Positions 17,101 through 32,100 are shown, numbered from the stretch's first letter. The stretch: DNA of 64,000 nucleotides from Auanema rhodensis (GCA_964057225.1 OZ059898.1:5704001-5768000); one strand, 5' to 3'. The notes: generated by a model from the letters alone, not told the origin. Numbers and translations are program-made.

Positions 17101-20100
17101 CAACTTTATCCAGCTCCTACTGCTTTCTTCTGTTTTGATTTCTGCTTCTTCTTCTAGCATGTACACCTACACAGAACATAATATAGAATTTCTATGACAC
17201 TTTAAATCAATTAACTAAACTTTCTTCTGATTATTCAAATTTTTTAAGTTTTTTTCCTATTAATCTATTAATTATGTTATTATTTTATTAGTTCTTTCAT
17301 TAACAAGTCTTTTAAGAACATTTATCTCATATTTGTGAGAAAAATTAACTTTTGAAAAGAAAGTTAATATATGAATTTTGATAAATTGTTCTAATCTTAA
17401 CATCCTTTTTTAACAAATTTACTTGTATAATTATTTTTTATATATTTAGCCCTTGTCTCTACTCCACGTGTTTCAACTCGTGGAAATGATCTTCATGTCG
17501 AATGGAGAAGTGAAGGCGACGGACGTGGTGTCTTCGGATATAGAGTTCAATTCCGTAATGAAAACTCCGGATGGAATCCTTATGGGTAATCTTGATTATT
17601 TGAAATATTTTGGATAATTCTTTCAATATTTAGACAAATTGTACCTTATGTTGGAGATAATATGGATTATTCTCAAACATTAAATGGACTTCAATCTGGA
17701 CATACTTACTTTGTTCATATTCAAGTTTTAGATCGTAATTCATATGTTATGTATGTTAGTCCAGAAGCATCTGCTAAGAGCAGTTGTACAGCCCCATCTC
17801 ATCCACCATCTCACCTCAATGTGCAAGCCCCTGATCCATCTCACGTGAAAGTTTCTTGGGTTTTGCCACCACAAAGCACTTGGGGATGTGCTGATCTTCA
17901 ATTCGAAATTCAAGTATGGATCCCTCACTGTATTCCGTTTAGAAATTAGTTTAGGTAGACGAGCCACGTGGGCATGCTCCTATCACTATTGGAGGAGGTC
18001 AAACATCTCATATCCTCAATAGTTTACCTAATCAGGCTTGGTCTGTGAAGATTCGTGCTAAGAACTCTGCTGGACATTCATCTTGGACACCAGCTGCTCA
18101 AGTTCGTACTTCACCTGGGGGTGAACTTATTATTGGACCTAATGTTGCCTACAGGTAAATATAAAATTTTATAAATAGTTTGGAATATATAAAATTTAGA
18201 CAAGGAAATCCAAGTATTTCTTGGAAATCTAAGGAAAATGTTGAAGATTTGATTGAAAGTTATGTTCTTGAATGGAAGGCTGTTAACGAACAACAATGGA
18301 GACAACACAGCAATCCAGTAAGAATCTAATTATCTTTTTCAATTTCACTTTTCTGTATTTTCAGATTCCATTCAGTGGATGGCAACGACCATACTCTATC
18401 GATTTGGGAGAATTGCCAAAAGGACAAAACTATGAAGTTCGTGTCGTCGCCAAAGATCCAAATCGAGGAACAGCCTTTACATCACCCGTTGTCACTATTC
18501 ACACTCAATCTACTTGTTCTAAGCCTCGCCGTGCTCCATCTAATTTGGAAGTAGCACCAATTGGACCTACTCAAATCCGCTTAACTTGGGCTCCTCTCCA
18601 TGAAACTGAATGGAACTGTGATCGTCTGTGGTACATTGTTAAGTACAGTACCCCTCGTAATCAAGGGTTCAAAAACTTGACAAATGGAGAGAACTCTGTT
18701 GTTTTTGAATCTGATCCATACACTAAGTGGACATTTGAAGTTCAAGCTGCTAATCCATCCGGCGAAACCGAATGGTCTCGCACTCAAACAGCTCAGACAC
18801 AAGATTCTCCACCAGGACCTGTTTCCGATTTACGTGTTATGCCTATGGGAGGAGACTCACTTCAAGTAACCTGGAGACCACCAACCAATCCTAACGGACA
18901 TATTACTCTATATGAGGTAACATACCAATTGTTATCTCGTGGTATGTGTGAAAATGCCAACGAAGCTCCACGAACTATCACCACATTGGGACCTCATCAC
19001 GTAATCTCCGGGCTTCATCCACATTCTCGTTACAGGTGTGTTTACAAATGATTGATCTGTTCAAAAAAAATTATTTTCAGAGTTGGTGTTGCCGCTAAGT
19101 CTACTCTTGTTGGTGAACGTGTTGCTCAGGAAGTTCAGACTGATCAAGCTGCTCCAACTGCTGCTCCAGTATACATTCGCGTTGAAGAGCCAAAGCAAAC
19201 TGAGGCAACTATCAGCTGGCAAAACCCTCCATGTATTCAAGTATGAATATCAAAAGTATATTACTTTATATCTATTGTTATTATAGACTAATGGTGAAAT
19301 CACTGAGTACGAATACGAAGTATCACCAGTTGATCGTCGCTCCAACGCTCAACGAATCACTAACACTGTTCGTGGAACTCGCGCTCAAGTATCTAATCTA
19401 CAGCCATATACCAACTATAACGTCAAAGCTCGTGCGTACACTGCTCGTGGTCCTGGACCATGGTCTAATGAAACTCCATTCCGTACTGCTTCAGCTGAAA
19501 CAGTTCAAGTAAATTATTTTATTATTAGTTTGAAAATTATGTTAACGTTATTCAGGCTCCAAATTTCGTACGTGTTGTTAACACTGGAGCTGATAACGCT
19601 CACCTTGTTTGGCAATCCCCACATCCAAACAACGGATACGTTGATAAGTACAAGTGCAAATTTGGAGTTGTGGGATCTCAGAAATTTGAAGAACGTCAAT
19701 TCCCAGCCGTATCCCCATGTCAACAACGTATGATTGAGCGCCAACAGCTTCCTCCAAGTCCACCAGGATCTCGTCTTCACTGCGGACGCATTGACAACCT
19801 ACAACCTGAAAAAACTTACGATTTCCAAGTTGCTGCTCACGTTAAGGATTCTGGATGGTCTTCTTGGTCACAACCTGAGCGTACTCTTGTTACCGATTCT
19901 CCAGTTCATATTCTTACTGTTGATAAGGTTGGGGGAAGTGAAAACTCATTGCACATTGTCTGGACTGTCCGTCCAGATGATCGCTCTCGTGTTACATCTT
20001 TCCGTCTCCACGTTCAACCTGTTGATGGATCAAACCGTCCACAGACATTCAATGTTGATCGTGCCACTTATCAATATCGTATTGAAAACCTCCGTCCACG

Positions 20101-23100
20101 TACTCAGTACAATGTTACTGTTCAAGCTGCTACATCAAAGGAAATGTGTGGAGTAAGTTTTAATTAAACTATTTAATATTATAAAATAGTTGATAATCAT
20201 TCTTAATTGTGATGTTTAGGGTACTACTACTACTATGTGGACTGATGCTGCTCCATTGACTGCATTAGCCGTTGCCCCACGTATTCTTGCCGAAGAAGCT
20301 ACTTCTATCACCATCGAATGGGACAGCCACAACCGTGAAGCAGGATCTTTCATTGTTGAATATCGTCTTGAAGGTGGAGCTTGGCAACAATCTGCTAGAC
20401 GCATACCTGCTCATCCATCTGTCACCACTTACACTGCTACTGTTGATAATCTTCCAACTAATAACGTTGTTGATCTTCGTGTTCGTGTAGTTAGTCAACA
20501 GAATGAGCAATCTAATCCATCCCCAGAAGTTCGTGGACGCACAAAATGTTCTCCACCACCAAATCCTCCACAGGGTATTCGTGTTGATGCTCCAAATACC
20601 AATGAAGTTCGTGTCTCCTGGACTCGTCCAGCTAAGAACACTTGGATGTGCGATGAAATGAATACTGAAATCAGCTACCGTGTTGGAAATCAACCAGAAA
20701 AAACTGTTAAAGTCCCAGGAGATCAGACTGAGTACACCTTCCCAGCTGAACCTAATCAACGCTGGATTATCAAGCTTCGTGCCACCAATCAAGTTGGACA
20801 CAGTCCATGGAGCGCTGAGCAAACTATTACCACCCGTCAAGGAGCTCCAGGATCTGTTCGTGATCTACGCGTTAAGGCTTTATCTCCTAACGAGGTTCAT
20901 GTTCAATGGCTGGCTCCTCTCGTTCAACGTGGTACCATTGTTGGTTATGACATCAGTTATCGTCTGAAACATCGTCTTGCTTGTCCAGAGGAAGAGCCCA
21001 GAGACGTCAGTCGCGACTTTGTTACCGTTTACAATCACAAAGATCTTGATTACACTATTACTGGTCTTCTACCATACTCTCTATATGAAGTTCGTGTTCG
21101 TGCTCGTACTACAGAACTTGGACCTGAAGAATCGAAGGAAGTTTCTACAGAACAACAGCCACCATCATCTCCACCACTCAATCTCGAACTTACTTATGCT
21201 CTCGAACGCTCATTATCCTTCCAATGGGAATCAGTTGATTGCTCACAGCGTCACGGACATATCGTTAACTACGAATACGAAATTCTTGGTCAAGACGATT
21301 GGGCTAAACTTGAACGTCAAATTGCTAACACATCTGATACAAAGATTACTATTGAAGGTCTTACTCCCTACACCAAATATATCATGCGAGTAAAGGCTTA
21401 TAACAGCATTGGTGGAGGTCCAAACACCGAAAATCTTGACGCCATGACTGCCAAGGCTAACGCTCCACTTCCACCACAAGATCTTGTTGTCGCTCAGGAA
21501 GGAACTGATTTCTTCATGGTTTCATGGCTTCCACCATATCCACCATACGGTCCTCATGATGCTTACAAGGTTCGCTACCAACTCTTGGGTCCCGACAACA
21601 AATGGAACACAATTGAAAAAGGAATTCATGATGCTGCTCTCAAATGCCCAGCTGAATCTCCAAGATTCTGCTTCAATGCTACCGGATTAGATTCAGGACA
21701 ACAATATCGTGTACAAGTTTCTTGTCGCATTGAAGGAGGAAACTATGGACCTTGGTCTTCTATCGTTATTGCTAATACACTTCAAGTTTTACCTGATGCT
21801 CCACGCGCTATTCATCTTATTGAAAAGAGTGATCACTCCCTTCATATTCGCTGGATACCACCTGTTGATCCTAAAGGACATGTAAAACAATATCGTGTTT
21901 CCATTGTTTCTCTTGATGATGTTAATGATCAGCGCAAGAGCTACACCGTTGATCATCCAACTCTCACACATCTCTTTGATGGCTTGACCCCAGAAACATC
22001 ATATAACATTTCGATTGCTGCTGGAACAAAACAAGGATTTGGACGTGAAATCTGGACTAGATACACCACAGATCCATTCGTCATTCCTGTTGTTGGAACT
22101 ATGCCAACAGTCACTCCTGATGGAGCATCAGCTTTAGATGTTCAATGGCAAGGAGTTGTAGATCCACAAAACCGTATCAAGGGATACATAATTGAAATTC
22201 GTAATGCTGACACACCTGTATGGCAAGAAATCGGAGGTGTTATTCAACACGACCCTGTGAAGAGAACTTATCTTAAGAAACTTACCGGTCTTGATCCTGA
22301 CACTCTCTACTTTGTTCGAATCAAGGTTGTTGATAACAAGCAACGAGTAGGAGTTCCATCACCTGAAGCCCAAGGGCGTACAGGATGTGCTGCACCAACC
22401 GCACCACCAAGCAATGTTAATCTTGCCTCTCCATCCAATGTTCAAGTTCGTGTTAGCTGGCAAGCTCCAGTTAAAGCTTCTTGGCTTTGCTCCAATATCA
22501 GATACCGCTTGGAATACACCAATGGAACTAGCGGACGCAAACAACTGGAAATTCCAAATGCTAACATTGAGCATATCTTTGATTCGCCATCAAACACCAA
22601 ATGGGTTGTGCGTATTCGCACCGAAAACGACGCTGGAGCCTCAGAATGGAGTAAGGAACTCGAGCTTACCACAGCTGAAGGTGCTCCAAGTGCTGTTCAA
22701 GATCTAACAGCTACTCCAAACGGACCAACAAGCGCTGTTGTATCATGGAAGCCACCTGCAAATCCAAATGGCGCCATCACTGGATACACTCTTGTTTACA
22801 ACTTACGTTCAATCGGGCAGTGTGGACCACGTAGTTCAACTCCAATTGAGAAGCACGTACGTAGTGAAACTCAAACTCTCGATGGACTTCTTCCTGACTC
22901 CACTTATGATATTCATGTTATTGCCCATACCTCACATGCTGGACCCCAATCTTCAGTTGTATCTGTTACAACAGAAGAAGCTGTACCAACAGGCCCACCA
23001 ACCAATCTCCGGTGAGTAAAATTATTTAATTTGCTTTTTTTATCATATTTATTTTAGTGTGGGATCTGTTACATCTAATAGAGCTGATGTTATGTGGTCT

Positions 23101-26100
23101 CAACCTGATTGTGAGCTTCGCAATGGTAAAATCACCGATTACTATTACGAACTTGAAAGCATCGATAGCTGGGGACACAATACTTCTGATCATCATACTC
23201 AGGAACGTCTTACCCTTAACGATCTTGTTCCATACACTGAATACCGTGTTCGTGTTCGTGCCATCAATGCTGTAGGTGATGGACCATTTAGTGAATGGGT
23301 TACTTTCAACACCCAATCTGCTGCACCTCCAGCACCAACTGATCTTCAAGAAGAGGCCAGCTTCCCACATGCCATCGAAATTAGTTTCTTGCCACCAAGT
23401 CCTCCACATGGAAACATCGATTACTATCGTATTCGTCATACTCCATCAGGCGATGCTAACTACAAGGAAGTTCGCGTTGAAGTTGATCGTCTCGAATGCT
23501 CTGATTCCAACAAGCGCGATCGTTTGTGCTTCCGTGTATCTGAGCTTGATCCTGAACAAGAATATGATATTCAAGTAGCTGCTCACACTGAGGGAGGAGC
23601 ATGGTCTGAATGGTCTGATGCTTTGAACGCTCGTACCCAACAACAGAATATTCCTGTATTGGAACGTGAGCTCGAAGTTATTGATACCAAACCAAACTCA
23701 ATCTCCTTGAGATTCGAAGGATTGCCACAAGACCAAGCTACTCATGTTCTTGGATATATTCTTGAATACAAACCTGAAGATGATGGTTCTGAATGGCAAG
23801 AATACAATGGAATGATCAAGCACCGTAAGGGTCTTACTGATTATAAGGTTACTGTCAAGGAGTTGGAAACTGCTACCCTATACTTCTTCCGATTGAAGGT
23901 TGTTGGTAAGGGTGAGAAACGTGGAGCACCTGGACCAGAAACTAAAGCAATGACTAGCTGCGGAAAGCCAGAAGAACCACCTAGCAACATCAAACTAGAA
24001 AGTGTCGATTTCCAGACAATGAAGATTAACTGGCAGCCACCATCAGAAGACTCATGGCGCTGTGATGATGTTGAATTCGTAATAGACTATGTCAACACTA
24101 CATCACGTGGACAGTGGACAGTATCTGTAGATGCTCCAAATGAGCTTATCGTACCAACATTACCAGGAACCAAATGGGAGATCAAGATGAGAACTCAGAC
24201 TAAAGAAGACAACGCTAAGCCACAGACCAGTAAATGGAGTGACAAGGTTTCTTTGACTACCCAATCTCTTCCCGGAGAGTTGTTTGTCAATGTTGAGCCT
24301 CAAGGACCACGTGAAGCTGTTGTTACCTGGGATCTTCCTGATAAGGATCAGAAATGGAATTATGGAGTTGATATCACTTACCGTCTTAAACAACTTGGAG
24401 GATGCTCTGAAACCGCAAGTGGATCTCATGAACCTATTACTAAACTTAATGTGCAAGAGAAACAAATCAAGCTTGAAGATCTTGCTCCAGGAAGTTTGTA
24501 CGAAGTTATTGTAACTCCACGTAGACCACCGTCACTTCACTCTTCTATCGTCGCACCAAAGACTGTTAGAACCTTCCGTACTGACAACGATGTCCCAGTT
24601 GGACCACCAACAAATCTTCAATCAACAACTAGAAAGGATACTGAACTTGGATTCAAATGGGAAGCACCAGATTGTATTAATCAAAATGGAAACATCACTC
24701 AATACGAATTTGAATTGGTTGGACTTGACGAATGGAATGAGGGAGTTCGTGAGGGTGTCAGCTCTCGTCTCAACACTGTCGTTGATCAACTTCAACCTGG
24801 TTCCCTTTATGGTATGCGTGTTCGTGCGTACACTTCTGAAGGTCCAGGACCATGGTCTGATCAACTTAGTGTCAGAACTACCGGATCTGAACTTGGACCT
24901 CCACGTGAGCTCACAGCGGTTCAAACAAAATCAACCCAGATTCAACTTACATGGCTCCCACCATATCCAGAAAAGGCTATTGTCACAGCTTACAGAATTC
25001 GCTACAGTCCACGTGCAGATGACTCAAATCCAACTGAAGTTGAACTCTCCGGTGATGATTTGACTTGTACTGGATACAAGAGTCCTATCATCACAACCGC
25101 AAATCTTTGTGCCACCATCAAGGGACTCCAGCCATCTACAACTTATCGCTTTGCCGTTCAAGGACAATCAGCTTCTGGAACATGGGGAGAATGGTCCAGC
25201 GACTACTTCTCCACTACCAGAAAGGATGACAATGATCTTTTGGGCGGAAGTCTTCGACTTCTCTCAGCTGGCCATGATAATTTTAAAGTTAAATGGACTC
25301 CACCAGCTGTTATTGGAGAAAAGATTGATAAGTATGAGCTTTTCATCTCCGTGGCTTCTGTTCTCGATCAGAATCCTAAGAAGTATGAGACACCAGGACG
25401 CGTTTATGAATATCATTTCCGCGCATTAGAACCTGTAACCCAATACAACGTCACTGTTCAAGGATTGGATGAGAACAGCAAGCTCTGGTTCATATCCGCT
25501 GTCTTTGCCACCACTGACTTTGCTGAAGGTCTTCTCAGCTGGCTGCCAGCTCCAACTGATCTTCATCTTATTGAAAAGAGTGATACCATGCTTCACGTCG
25601 ATTGGGTACCACCTGAGATCTTTGATCCAGAGCAACGTGAATTGATTACTCATTATCGTGTTACTATTGCTCCATTTGATCATCATACAGGCATTACTGG
25701 AACACCAAAGAATTACACTGTTCCAGTTCCCGGAAATTCTATCAAATTCGAAGGACTTAATCCAGAAACTGTTTACAATATAACCGTCCAAGCTGGAACT
25801 AACTCTGGCTATGGTCATATTCTCTGGGGTACCTACAGTACTCTGGCACCTGGACAACGTCATATTCTCCGTCTCCTTAACCGTACTCCAACCACCTTAA
25901 CGGTAGAATGGGAACCAGTTTGGGGCCGTAGCCATAGTGGATACACTGTATGTTTTAATTTTTTTGAACGTATTTTTATGATTCTTATTTCAGCTTACTG
26001 CTAGATCTCTTCACTCAGTTTTCCCACATGTCAGAATTCACCAGCTTAAATCATTTGATGTCGATGCTTCTGAAACTGAATTTGTTATTCGTGGACTTCA

Positions 26101-29100
26101 TCCATCTACCGTATACAACGTTACTTTAACGCCAAAGGATCATAATGAAGTTGCTTGGGGTGCATATGCTACTCTACCACCTGGCTGGTTCATGGTCAAG
26201 AACTTGAAGCAATGTGACCGTACCGATTTCGCTGTTTCCATGAGCTGGGAACCTGTTGAACTCAACATGGCCTCAGATTATCAAGTCAGATATCTTCGTC
26301 TTAAGGATAACGAAGCTAGCTGGATGGAAGAAGTTGCTCGTCCAGCTAAAGAGCTGTTGTGCCCTAAGGATGGATGCGGACGTCTTTGTTATCTCGTCTT
26401 CAACTTACCACACAATCCATCTGAATATGTGTTCCAAGTTCGTGCTAAGGTTGACGGTGAATGGAACCACTGGAAGTCAGCACCAAAGAAGGTTATAAGT
26501 ACTGAGCCAGCTGAGGTTCGCCGTAGCTGTTGTATCGTACCTCCACCTTACTTCGTTGATAACATCGGAGCACCAGGAACCTACTGGGAAGTTGATGTTA
26601 ACCCTGCTGCTACAGAAAAGAACATTACGTAAGTTTCTACATAAGCTATGAACTCTCAAAAAATAATGTCTTGCAGGAGATATTATGTTGTTGTTGATGA
26701 ACGTGATCCCCCTGGAGATACCAACTGGACCGAACTCACTGACAAGGTTACAGCTAACAGCATGAAGATTCCATATTATGTTGCCGCATCCTTCAATTTG
26801 GAAACCCTTCCTGAACCTAGAAAGGTTGGTATCATCTTAAATTATTAAAACTGAATATAGTAATTTCTTAAATTCTAAAACGATTTGGTGATAAAAATCA
26901 GATTTTACGCTAATATTATGATCAGCCTTTTCGTTTACTCAAGCAATGTAAAGACCACTTATAGTTTCCTATCGTTCAATATATGAGGTGTTATACTACT
27001 TCTCATTCTCTCTCAAAATTTTATAAAGAGACTTTAATAGTGTTTGATTTAGTACATGTTTACATTGCATGCGACAATACTATATACAGACATTTTATTC
27101 TTTTATATTGTGAATAATCAATATAATAATAGCCTTCTTAAAAGAAGCATCATAACCTAACTTGATATAGCTAGCTGGATAAAAATCGTTTTATTTATTT
27201 GTTTTGAAATGTACTCATTCTATTGCTTTAGGTTCGCCTCGGAGATGGACAAGTTATTGGAGGTTATTTGAATTATCCATTAACTAAAGGAAAGAAATAT
27301 AACTATGAGATTTATACCATATGGAATGTAACTGGAGCACCATTAGTTGGACGTCTGAGAGGTACGTGATATGTTCTAAGTTACATTGAAAACTTCAATA
27401 ATCGAATGCGTTCATATGAAAGCTAAAGAGACAAAGAAATGGAGTAAACGCCTTTCTAACCAAGCAAAAATCAAAATAAGAAAGAAAATAAGGAACAAGT
27501 TTGCCAAAACTAGAAGCAATTATGTGTAAAAGAAGAAAAATTGGTAGAAATAAATAGTTTCTGTCTCTATCTCTCTCTATCTTTCTCTCTCAATCTCTCA
27601 ATCTCTCTATATCTCTTTCTTCCTATTGATATCATGATGTTAATGATGACCCTCCAAATAGCTTATAGCAATCTCTATCTTTGCGTATGCCTGCTAGCGT
27701 AAAATGATTAATAAATCGACAATAATGTGAAGATAAGTGATGGAAAAGGAAGCAGATATAGACAAGAAAGGTGGATACATAGAGTAGAGGTTTAATCAGC
27801 GGGTTTATCGATGAAGTATATGTTGTTCAGATATATCTATAATGTTTAGATCATTAATATCATCGGTAAAACAGAATGAAATTTCCAATCTAACGATATT
27901 TCATTTTTCACTCTTTACCTCTACTCTTTTTTAATGATCTCTCTATCTCTCACTCTCTCATTATAATAAGTTTTCATATTCTATCACCTACATTTCCTTA
28001 AATCAACCAATGCGCAACACACCCTTTTACACACATCCATGTTCTCTTATTTTTCTTTGTTTCTCTATTCCTTCTCTAAATCTCTTTCTTATTTATTATC
28101 TATAACAGTCAACTTTAATTCAAGAAATGAGATAGATAGTGAAGTTAACCATGAGATTCAGAATTTCAAGATAGCGTGAATAGAACCAACTTGTGGGGCG
28201 GAGAGAAATAAGGAGAAAATAGCGAAAATGTAAAGACCCAGACGATAAAGGAAATGCAAGCAGTACGACTGTGCAATTGACGAGATAGCACAGACGCAAC
28301 CGTTTAGTTAGCAAGAAAGCTGAATGACATGGAGAAAGAGAATTAAGAAATGGAGAAAAAGGATGGAGTATATAAAGGAAAGAAACGAGAGGAAGAGAGA
28401 AGATGAACAAGTGTGAGAGTAAAAGAGAATGAGAGAGAAAAAGAAAGAGGTAGAGACAGAAAGAGAGAAAGAGAGAGAGAGAGAAAGAGAGAGAGAGAAA
28501 GCCACCAGCAGCCTTGTCACCCCCTGTGGCCACCCTACGGTTTTGTCGTCATCTACGCTCTACCCCGTACGCACCGTAAATGGCTTGGCTGCCCGACGGT
28601 ACGTTTACATTCCTGACATCCTCATACGATTCTACAATCATTCATATATATTCGAGCTCTAATATATTTAATAGTTTATATACATTTTTATTAAAACAAT
28701 AGTTAAATAATTAGTTGTATTGTTTTCATTCTATAATTATAAAATATAAACATGATATCTATTGATAATAATATCCTATCAATTTATATTTTATTTTACA
28801 ATTATTCTTCTAGTTATGGCAAACATTTATCCTTTACTTATATTATTTCTATTATTTTGAAATTTTGTTTTTTAAGTTTCTCAAGCAATTACAACGAAAA
28901 AAAGCTTAACATTTTCTTATCAATAGTCGAATGTTAGTTTATAATTCATTTTCACTTGAAAAACTGTGAAATTCTTTAAATGTCATCATATCAATCAATG
29001 CCATTGAAATGAATTATAGTGTTTTTATTTCTTTTTAATTATTAAAATTTCATGAAATTAAATATATTACTTTAACTATGTATTATTATTTTGATTATTT

Positions 29101-32100
29101 CCAAAAACAGATCAAAAACATTCTAGATGTACGTAGTTTCTGGCAACGTGTACCATGGTGGTGGATAATTCCACTACTTGTCACATTATGTATTCTTCTA
29201 CCATGTGTAGCATGGCTTTGTTGTTATGCTCGGTAAGGAAGAATAGTAGCTTCTTTGATGATAAAAGCATGTTTCCTCAACATTTTCTTTGTACAGCTAC
29301 TACTTCTTTCTAATTAACTTCTATAGACTGATGTCTTACAGTCACTATTCATCTATTACCTTTCTATCAAACTTTTCTTAATAAGTAAACTGACAACATG
29401 AATTTACATTACCATTCAAAACAACACTAATTAAAATTTATTAATTTACTGTAATAATTAATTGGAAAAATGCTTGTGGTTAAAATAATTACAGTATTAT
29501 ACCATCATTTATAAAATTTATCCCCCCCCCCCTCATAACAAAGATAACATGTCAACATTTTTATTCCAGCTTCACCATACATCACAGCCGGATGGCCGTG
29601 GTGGTGGTTGCTTCTTCTTCTACTATTACTTCTTCTTTTAATTCTTCTCACCTGCTGTCTACTATGGTGTATTCAACGGTAATTTAGTTATACATATCTA
29701 ATTATATAATTATAACAACAAGGATCATGGACAAAAAGGGAACTTCATTATAAAATTATGTGATTCACATGCATGATTGTTTGATACTTTTACATATTTT
29801 CCATTCCATTTATTATATTAACAATTCATTTTCCATTTAAAAGTTTCCATAAACAGTAATAATCATTATATTTTAGACGATTCCGTTCTCGTAAAGAACA
29901 CCGTCGACTTGTAACCAATGGACAACATGTTCCACTTCTTAATGATGTAAGTATTAAATTATTATTATTGTGTATATTATAATTATTTGTTTTATTACCA
30001 AATTTTCATATTTTTCTTACAGGACAAGGCTATGGAAGCTAATTTACGATCATTGGAATCACGATTGGATAAAATGAGAGATGGAAGAGGTAAGACTTGT
30101 ATAGAGAAGAATGTATTGAAAATCTAAAGATGAAAGAAGAGGAGTGATGAGTTGACAAACTGAACACAAAAGGATTGACATTGAAATCAATAGCAAAAGT
30201 AAAAAAATTTGAATTGAAATAGTAAAAGAAATAATGAGAAAAGAAGATTGATCTATCTCTCGTTCCTTTATTACCTTAAACTATTGCCATTATTCATTTG
30301 AACTACTAAAACATGTTGATATTATTAGTTATGGAAATCTCTTTATAAAAAAGGGATTATAACCAAGTTTTTATGAAATATTTAATGTGTGAAAACGAAG
30401 ATCAAACTTGAAAAAGAAGTATATATGTTTATATGTATATGATGTCTGTGGTATAAAACGTATCTCGACCTCGACACCATTGCTGATATCAAAGAAGAAT
30501 GAATGAAAAAGAAAATAAAGATAAAGAGACTAATAGATCTTACTCTTTCCCTGTTGCCAATTTCAATCTGTGAACTTCATGTTCAATTCTCTTATTTGTA
30601 GTTTTCATATTAGTTGAAGAAAAAATTTATCAATTAGTTTGATTCTAATTATACAGATGAGAAACCGTTTAATATTGAAATAGTAATAGTTTTTGATATC
30701 ACTTTAAATAAAATATAAATAAACTATATATTTTATTATAAATAATAATTAAATTATAAAAACATTTTTATCTTAAATTATTAGAAATATTTTGGTTTTT
30801 AAACGATATGTTCTAAATTTAAAAAAAACTTTTCTCTCTGTTTATCAATCAGCCGGAATGTCAAGAAGTCCTTGAATATGTGGGTGTGGTCGACGACGTC
30901 GTTCATATTAGGCGCTTCATCGCATGTCGTAGTTGTCATCGTTTGTAGTATAGGGTCGAATTTTCAGAATCATTGTCTTTATTTATTTTCTCACAAACAT
31001 ACATACATCTATACATACATATAAAAGAAAGTTATAGTATGACAGGGGAGAAAAAGAAGGACATTTGAATGTATGTATATGTGTATCTGTATCTACACCT
31101 GCATATGTTTTTTTTAAAATATATATATAAATATATATAATTCTAAATATTTTAATATAAAAATAAATATATTATATATATAATTATAAAAAGAAGAACA
31201 ATGTGTACATACAGATCAGTACATATTTGACATAAATTAACGAAAATTAGTGTGAATATTTCATAATGAAGATCTTCGCATGTGAGAGATAGAGATAGTT
31301 CGATAGATGTTCAATGATTTTTCTGATATATTTCTTCTGATTACGACAAGAAGACATCACTTGGAAAATACTATAAATTAGCATTAAATTGGATCAGAAT
31401 GGTGTTAGATTAGAAGAAAAGAAATTTTTATCCATCATTCGATTGAATAAATTTGATTTTTAGGTTCAGGAGATTTTGAGGATGGTTACATGAAGGGATA
31501 CCGTGATGCAAACAAGCTTGGATCAGCTTCAGCCGCCAGAAGACGTATGGATGATGATTTCGGAGGTCGTGACGATCGTTTCCGTGAGGGATACAGTAAG
31601 GGTCTCAAGTACGTATCCTGTTATCGCTAGATTATAGCATATAATATGAATTATAAATTATCTTTGAATTGGTTTCAGGGACGCTGGAATGACTGGAATG
31701 TCGACTTCTATGCATAATTTGGCCAATAAGGGAGCATCTGCTGGCGGATACTCTGCTGGCTTTATGCAAGGATACAAGGTAAATAATGTAGAAAATATTA
31801 TTATTAATACAAAGATAATTACAGGATGGTGGTTCTGGAATCTTTGGTGACCGTGTAACTCCATCCCTCATTTCACGCTTGGATGACCAATATCCTGGTC
31901 AAGACGATTTCAAGCAAGGATATGTTGACGGCTTCAAGGAAGGAGCTGCTTCACGTACTGGTGAAAAGAGAGTAAGTTTTAAGAAATAAATAAATTGTTA
32001 TACTTCTTTTGTAGACATTCGAGGATTCTCGCCGTCTCCAACAATCTCTGACTGAGCTTACCGAGAGATTGACTTCTCTTGAGAAGACTAAGGGAGATGA

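Follow-up and report, generated by a model that had tools for sequence, protein, structure and literature searches.

The window, a stretch of 64,000 nucleotides of the Auanema rhodensis genome, contains two tandem transmembrane exons (A and B, Table 1) which, on comparison with other nematodes, we regard with high confidence as the orthologues of exons 19a and 19b of the let-805 gene: a pair of homologous, mutually exclusive exons, of which B would be the default and A the regulated choice. The orthologous pair has been published and validated experimentally in Caenorhabditis elegans, and the switch as such is already known. What the present comparison adds to it is modest: the conservation of exon A, the near-invariance of exon B, a GCAUG element downstream of exon A, and a number of errors in the public gene models.

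The gene that hosts the pair is, judging by its protein matches and exon layout, the let-805/myotactin orthologue of this rhabditid nematode, encoding a giant adhesion protein of FN3 repeats. Its 981-aa ORF at 23059-26001 is 95.4% identical to the Auanema sp. JU1783 protein CAI4231782.1 (P0161) and 79.4% identical to C. elegans LET-805 (NP_001022641.1) across 973 aa, and matches strongylid and Caenorhabditis proteins at 79-82% identity. The big plus-strand ORFs of the window are rows of fn3 domains, with 7-8 of them in each large exon. In tblastn searches the JU1783 protein is colinear with the window exons from 11177 to past 33004, and its residues 3752-3795 map to the last ectodomain exon, whose end, YNYE[IV]Y...GRLR, is common to all nematode orthologues. 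The basic stretch of the first common cytoplasmic exon comes after either helix. The G+C content of the window is 33%, and the introns are much longer than those of C. elegans let-805.

Table 1. Features of the myotactin transmembrane region in the window (a slash marks an exon border)
Feature	Coordinates	Strand	Description
Last ectodomain exon	27232..27361	+	VRLGDGQVIGGYLNYPLTKGKKYNYEIYTIWNVTGAPLVGRLR; ends 1 base into codon; donor /gtacgt
19-nt ATG exon	28580..28598	+	ATGGCTTGGCTGCCCGACG/gt; MAWLPD + 1 nt; candidate alternative first exon
Exon A	29127..29232	+	106 nt, 3n+1; encodes D-VRSFWQRVPWWWIIPLLVTLCILLPCVAWLCCYA-R; putative C. elegans exon 19a orthologue
GCAUG element	29267..29271	+	35 nt past exon A; candidate Rbfox-type (ASD-1/FOX-1) site
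Exon B	29570..29678	+	109 nt, 3n+1; encodes A-SPYITAGWPWWWLLLLLLLLLLLILLTCCLLWCIQ-R; putative C. elegans exon 19b orthologue
First common cytoplasmic exon	29877..29946	+	(R)RFRSRKEHRRLVTNGQHVPLLND; preceded by ttttag

The first-pass annotation had described two tandem exons with AG/GT splice sites, phase 1 to phase 2 and lengths of 3n+1, and both the coordinates and the splicing frames hold up, as do the PWWW motif, the cysteine counts (four in A and three in B) and the split Arg codon (CG/A). Exon A is bordered by ...attctag/ATGTACG...TGCTCG/gtaagg, with a non-consensus TAG acceptor, and exon B by ...ttattccag/CTTCACC...TCAACG/gtaatt, with an acceptor close to the consensus (ttccag). When all splice combinations are translated, the product with A only reads ...VGRLR-D-VRSFWQRVPWWWIIPLLVTLCILLPCVAWLCCYA-R-RFRSRKEH... 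and the product with B only reads ...VGRLR-A-SPYITAGWPWWWLLLLLLLLLLLILLTCCLLWCIQ-R-RFRSRKEH..., whereas inclusion of both exons, or of neither, shifts the frame and leads to a premature stop inside the next exon. Since both exons are 3n+1, the cytoplasmic domain is in frame only with exactly one of them. The earlier proposal that only one-at-a-time use is productive is thus borne out, each exon alone joining 27361 to 29877 in frame. The likeness between the two peptides is modest yet above chance: aligned globally with BLOSUM62 they score 48, whereas shuffled sequences average 10.9 and 5 of 2000 shuffles score that high. Searches of 26900-31500 with the A-type and B-type profiles and with a WWW scan found no third transmembrane-like exon.

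Whether such a pair had been annotated before was a question left by the first-pass annotation, and the answer is yes: the C. elegans exons were published in 1999, and RT-PCR validated them in 2014. In the earlier paper, Hresko et al. (1999; PMC2150558) presented let-805 exons 19A and 19B as alternative transmembrane domains that are used alternatively, and deposited cDNA forms A (with 19A) and B (with 19B). Kuroyanagi et al. (2014; PMC4165533) placed let-805 19a/19b among the RT-PCR-verified clusters of homologous mutually exclusive exons, with 19a of 118 nt (3n+1, 44 supporting reads) and 19b of 109 nt (3n+1, 34 reads) separated by a 97-nt intron and sharing 40.4% nucleotide and 33.3% amino-acid identity. 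In the same study, loss of NMD in a smg-2 mutant left the wild-type let-805 RT-PCR pattern as it was. The lack of an aberrant isoform with NMD off indicates that in C. elegans it is splicing itself that selects the exon, and not the decay of mis-spliced RNA. At the C. elegans locus (L002, chromosome III 2657096-2681723) we read 19a and 19b at their published positions, 19452-19569 and 19667-19775.

The resemblance between the two pairs extends to their surroundings. Both lie between a phase-1 exon ending in ...GRLR and an exon encoding RRxRSxKEH, both consist of two tandem 3n+1 exons each carrying one transmembrane helix and a cysteine cluster, exon B is 109 nt long in both, and in both a GCAUG occurs about 20-35 nt past the first exon. 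The differences concern the length of exon A (106 nt in the window versus 118 nt in C. elegans), the PWWW motif, which the window exon A retains and Caenorhabditis 19a has lost, and the A-B intron (337 nt versus 97 nt). While splicing of the pair has been shown experimentally for C. elegans, the window pair is read from DNA. The notion of a mutually exclusive, frame-enforced transmembrane pair derived from duplication, put forward in the first-pass annotation, agrees with the experiments on the C. elegans orthologue.

The correspondence holds exon by exon, window A matching 19a and window B matching 19b, as judged from profiles built leaving out the tested sequences (no Auanema for the window exons and no Caenorhabditis for 19a). 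Window A scores 43.2 bits with the A-type profile and -1.2 bits with the B-type profile, and window B scores 3.4 and 70.0 bits, respectively. C. briggsae 19a, which retains the DVRGW start of other A-types, scores 15.3 bits with the A-type and 8.3 bits with the B-type profile. C. elegans 19a, with scores of -0.6 and 13.7 bits in the same order, is too diverged for an A-type call by sequence alone; its assignment to the A type derives from its position and phase and from a clear resemblance to C. briggsae 19a. Window B and C. elegans 19b share 70% identity. The lengths of exons A and B are 106 and 109 nt in JU1783, 112 and 109 nt in Pristionchus pacificus, and 118 and 109 nt in C. elegans.

Outside Auanema, A-type helices occur in C. 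briggsae (ULU01580.1), Acrobeloides nanus, three Pristionchus species, Nippostrongylus brasiliensis and an ascarid, and the N. brasiliensis helix, DVRGWWSRVPWWWLLPALLAVALLLPCLIWLCC, has its prolines at the same places as window A. All orthologues recovered, as far away as Trichuris and Trichinella, have a B-type helix. Compared pairwise over one set of 8 species, A averages 43% identity and B 77%. On this comparison exon A is maintained in nematodes of clades III-V and exon B is near-invariant; the comparative data establish the switch as old and place the B helix among the most conserved parts of myotactin. Neither Trichuris trichiura nor the filaria Loa loa, searched in its 4.7-kb intron, yielded an A-type exon, both being weak negatives given that the profile is short and hydrophobic. 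The T. trichiura locus (L003, at ~29268-29330) has a single transmembrane exon that follows an intron of only ~60 nt; its helix is B-like, yet the exon begins with Asp like the A-types. A single exon in Trichuris fits either a duplication after the clade I split or a loss in clade I.

Could the choice of helix be dictated by the choice of promoter? Blastn of the whole interval between the window and the JU1783 locus (L001) aligns the exons, their flanks of ~15 nt and one intronic block, and nothing else. This sole conserved intronic block (window 28472-28620, L001 18241-18368) contains a 19-nt exon beginning with ATG, whose phase fits joining exon A or exon B. Counterparts that are likewise 19 nt long are found in JU1783, in C. 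elegans (ATGTCCGCATATCCTGATG/gtgagt, L002 19398-19416, MSAYPD), 35 nt before 19a, and in P. pacificus (L005 28115-28133, MAVYPS). In an intronless, transcript-like JGI contig (L006), 536 nt of non-coding sequence precede MSVLPD (537-555), which runs into a B-type helix and then into the cytoplasmic tail, and this intronless MSVLPD-to-B junction shows that the donor of the ATG exon is used in an mRNA. The gene models of Mesorhabditis, Acrobeloides and Ditylenchus likewise run from MxxxPD directly into a B-type helix. These observations support the idea that a form of myotactin devoid of the ectodomain may exist.

If promoter choice dictated the helix, transcripts starting at the ATG exon would use one transmembrane exon and full-length transcripts the other. 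We consider such a coupling improbable. Its attraction lies in the ATG exon itself, which Auanema, C. elegans and P. pacificus all keep in a fitting phase, in the uniform MxxxPD-B-type arrangement of the contig and these gene models, and in the C. elegans gap before 19a, which falls below the minimal intron of roughly 40 nt (PMC4165533), so that there the ATG exon would probably have to join 19b. However, the ectodomain joins A in the C. briggsae model P0196 and the Acrobeloides model P0170 and joins B in most others, and the existence of ectodomain models with either helix means that the coupling is not strict. Moreover, the ATG exon of the window lies 528 nt before exon A, which leaves no steric bar to their joining, and the ATG exon is a candidate transcription start only.

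A different objection to the switch in Auanema would be that exon A is a decaying duplicate, a pseudo-exon left unspliced in this lineage, with B alone in use. The annotated JU1783 model has B only, and the acceptor of exon A departs from the consensus. Between the two Auanema species exon A also shows a high ratio of nonsynonymous to synonymous differences (6 versus 5), while exon B (L001 18711-18819; 82.6% identity) shows 17 synonymous-site and 2 nonsynonymous differences; these counts imply that protein-level constraint is weaker on A than on B. Nevertheless, we find the pseudo-exon explanation very unlikely. The JU1783 exon A (L001 18476-18581) has kept the length of 106 nt, the TAG acceptor and the GTAAGG donor seen in the window, and it is open in the coding frame only. 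At 89.6% nucleotide identity it is the best-conserved piece of the interval, set in an intron that is unalignable beyond the ~15-nt flank, and its four amino-acid replacements (P>A, L>V, T>S and I>L) are all conservative. A-type exons are kept in three nematode clades, and C. elegans 19a is expressed at a level similar to that of 19b. The conserved open counterpart of exon A, on whose presence in relatives the first-pass annotation had staked part of its reading, is found in JU1783, with A-types elsewhere. Still, it is from conservation only that we infer the use of exon A in A. rhodensis. Within the Auanema pair exon A exceeds exon B in identity at the nucleotide level and trails it at the protein level. 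The small number of synonymous changes in exon A is as expected if splicing signals sit in its sequence.

We thus favour the mutually exclusive use of both exons, in which each would supply a short extracellular stalk, a single transmembrane helix and a juxtamembrane cysteine cluster. Exon B would be the default anchor, given its near-consensus acceptor, its almost invariant sequence across Nematoda and its choice by most gene models. Exon A would be the regulated alternative, having a weaker acceptor and faster protein evolution while its frame is kept. At exon A both Auanema species have a TAG acceptor and C. elegans has AAG, and in these 3 of the 4 species A has the weaker acceptor; the acceptor of C. 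elegans 19b is tttcag, compared with ttccag for window B.

What could be the mechanism that selects between the exons? GCAUG is the core of the site bound by Rbfox factors (ASD-1/FOX-1), and such sites, when located downstream of an exon, generally favour its inclusion. GCATG is present within the A-B intron at 4 of 4 loci, at +35 in the window, +22 in JU1783, +23 in C. elegans and +116 in P. pacificus, with a shuffle probability of 0.03-0.05 per intron. The full UGCAUG is found in this intron only in C. elegans (as TGCATG); the window and the JU1783 locus have AGCAUG. The conserved (U)GCAUG past exon A would recruit an Rbfox-type factor (ASD-1/FOX-1) and thereby promote inclusion of A. The first-pass annotation had noted two elements, GCATG at 29267 and TGCATG at 29770. 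The former is in place and conserved; the latter exists at 29771, one position further on, and is not conserved. We rejected it as a conserved element, as JU1783 lacks it and so do the 150 nt that follow 19b in C. elegans.

A similar arrangement is seen in the C. elegans pairs regulated by Rbfox factors, egl-15 5B/5A and unc-32 7a/7b (PMC4165533), where (U)GCAUG in the flanking intron is likewise conserved and one exon has a weak acceptor, as let-805 exon A does. Unlike these pairs, whose regulation by Rbfox is established, let-805 has a candidate site recognised by its sequence alone, of the AGCAUG form in Auanema, and the gene acts mainly in the epidermis. In the literature on let-805 we found no named regulator of 19a/19b, and no link between let-805 and asd-1 or fox-1. 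Kuroyanagi et al. left the control of this pair open, and the conserved GCAUG after exon A provides a testable hypothesis as to the regulator.

Other ways of enforcing mutual exclusion fare worse. Steric exclusion was rejected, the A-B intron (337 nt in the window and 97-195 nt at the other loci) being longer than the minimum; U12 introns are absent from nematodes (PMC4165533). Pairing of a docking site with selector RNAs, as in insect Dscam1 clusters, is scarcely credible here, for the several imperfect inverted repeats near the exons are AT-rich and 70-82% complementary and lie in intron sequence that is unconserved between the two Auanema species, and the A-B intron varies from 97 to 337 nt across loci without an alignable core.

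The exon pair is a recurrent source of annotation errors. The public JU1783 model P0161 omits exon A. Both transmembrane exons are fused in P0206 (P. pacificus, KAF8358434.1) and P0201 (C. briggsae, CAP29382.2, CBR-LET-805), and both are also included in P0189, P0205, P0166 and P0254 (N. brasiliensis). These models are false two-helix or frame-shifted products. Three further models, P0001, P0007 and P0180, continue into the intron after ...GRLR. That intron, which precedes 19a in C. elegans, contains there a long degenerate array of TTAGGC-like hexamers (L002 ~18400-18690), TTAGGC being the repeat unit of nematode telomeres. The equivalent intron of the window has instead tracts rich in (GA)n/(CT)n, at ~27560-27620 and ~28400-28500.

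The consequences of exchanging one helix for the other are a matter of speculation. Literature searches found no role for either myotactin helix or isoform, and no localisation data for the LET-805 19a and 19b isoforms. Differences in helix packing, the prolines within the A helix, palmitoylation of the conserved CC/CCC cluster and altered targeting, the last two raised in the first-pass annotation, are candidate effects, all of them speculative. The swap of helix and cysteine cluster might alter lateral interactions, lipid modification or partition within the membrane at fibrous organelles. Exons 17.1 and 17.2 of Drosophila Dscam1 are reportedly alternative transmembrane segments for which a role in targeting has been demonstrated. 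In Dscam1, also a large adhesion receptor (Ig/FN3), mutually exclusive exons likewise exchange the part that crosses the membrane. However, the Dscam1 exons are not homologous to the myotactin switch and the comparison is one of analogy only; for the RNA-structure mechanisms of the other Dscam1 clusters, no counterpart was found around the window exons.

A broader interpretation, possible in our opinion although doubtful, would join these elements into one ancient module. It would comprise the A/B switch, an exon A made Rbfox-dependent by its conserved downstream GCAUG and its weak acceptor, and the conserved 19-nt start exon, yielding full-length and ectodomain-less forms of myotactin, and would date back at least to the common ancestor of ascarids, cephalobs and rhabditids while being absent from Trichuris. 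If this were true, either helix could be placed on both forms of the protein, and the helix would decide the membrane plaque or the partner with which myotactin associates.
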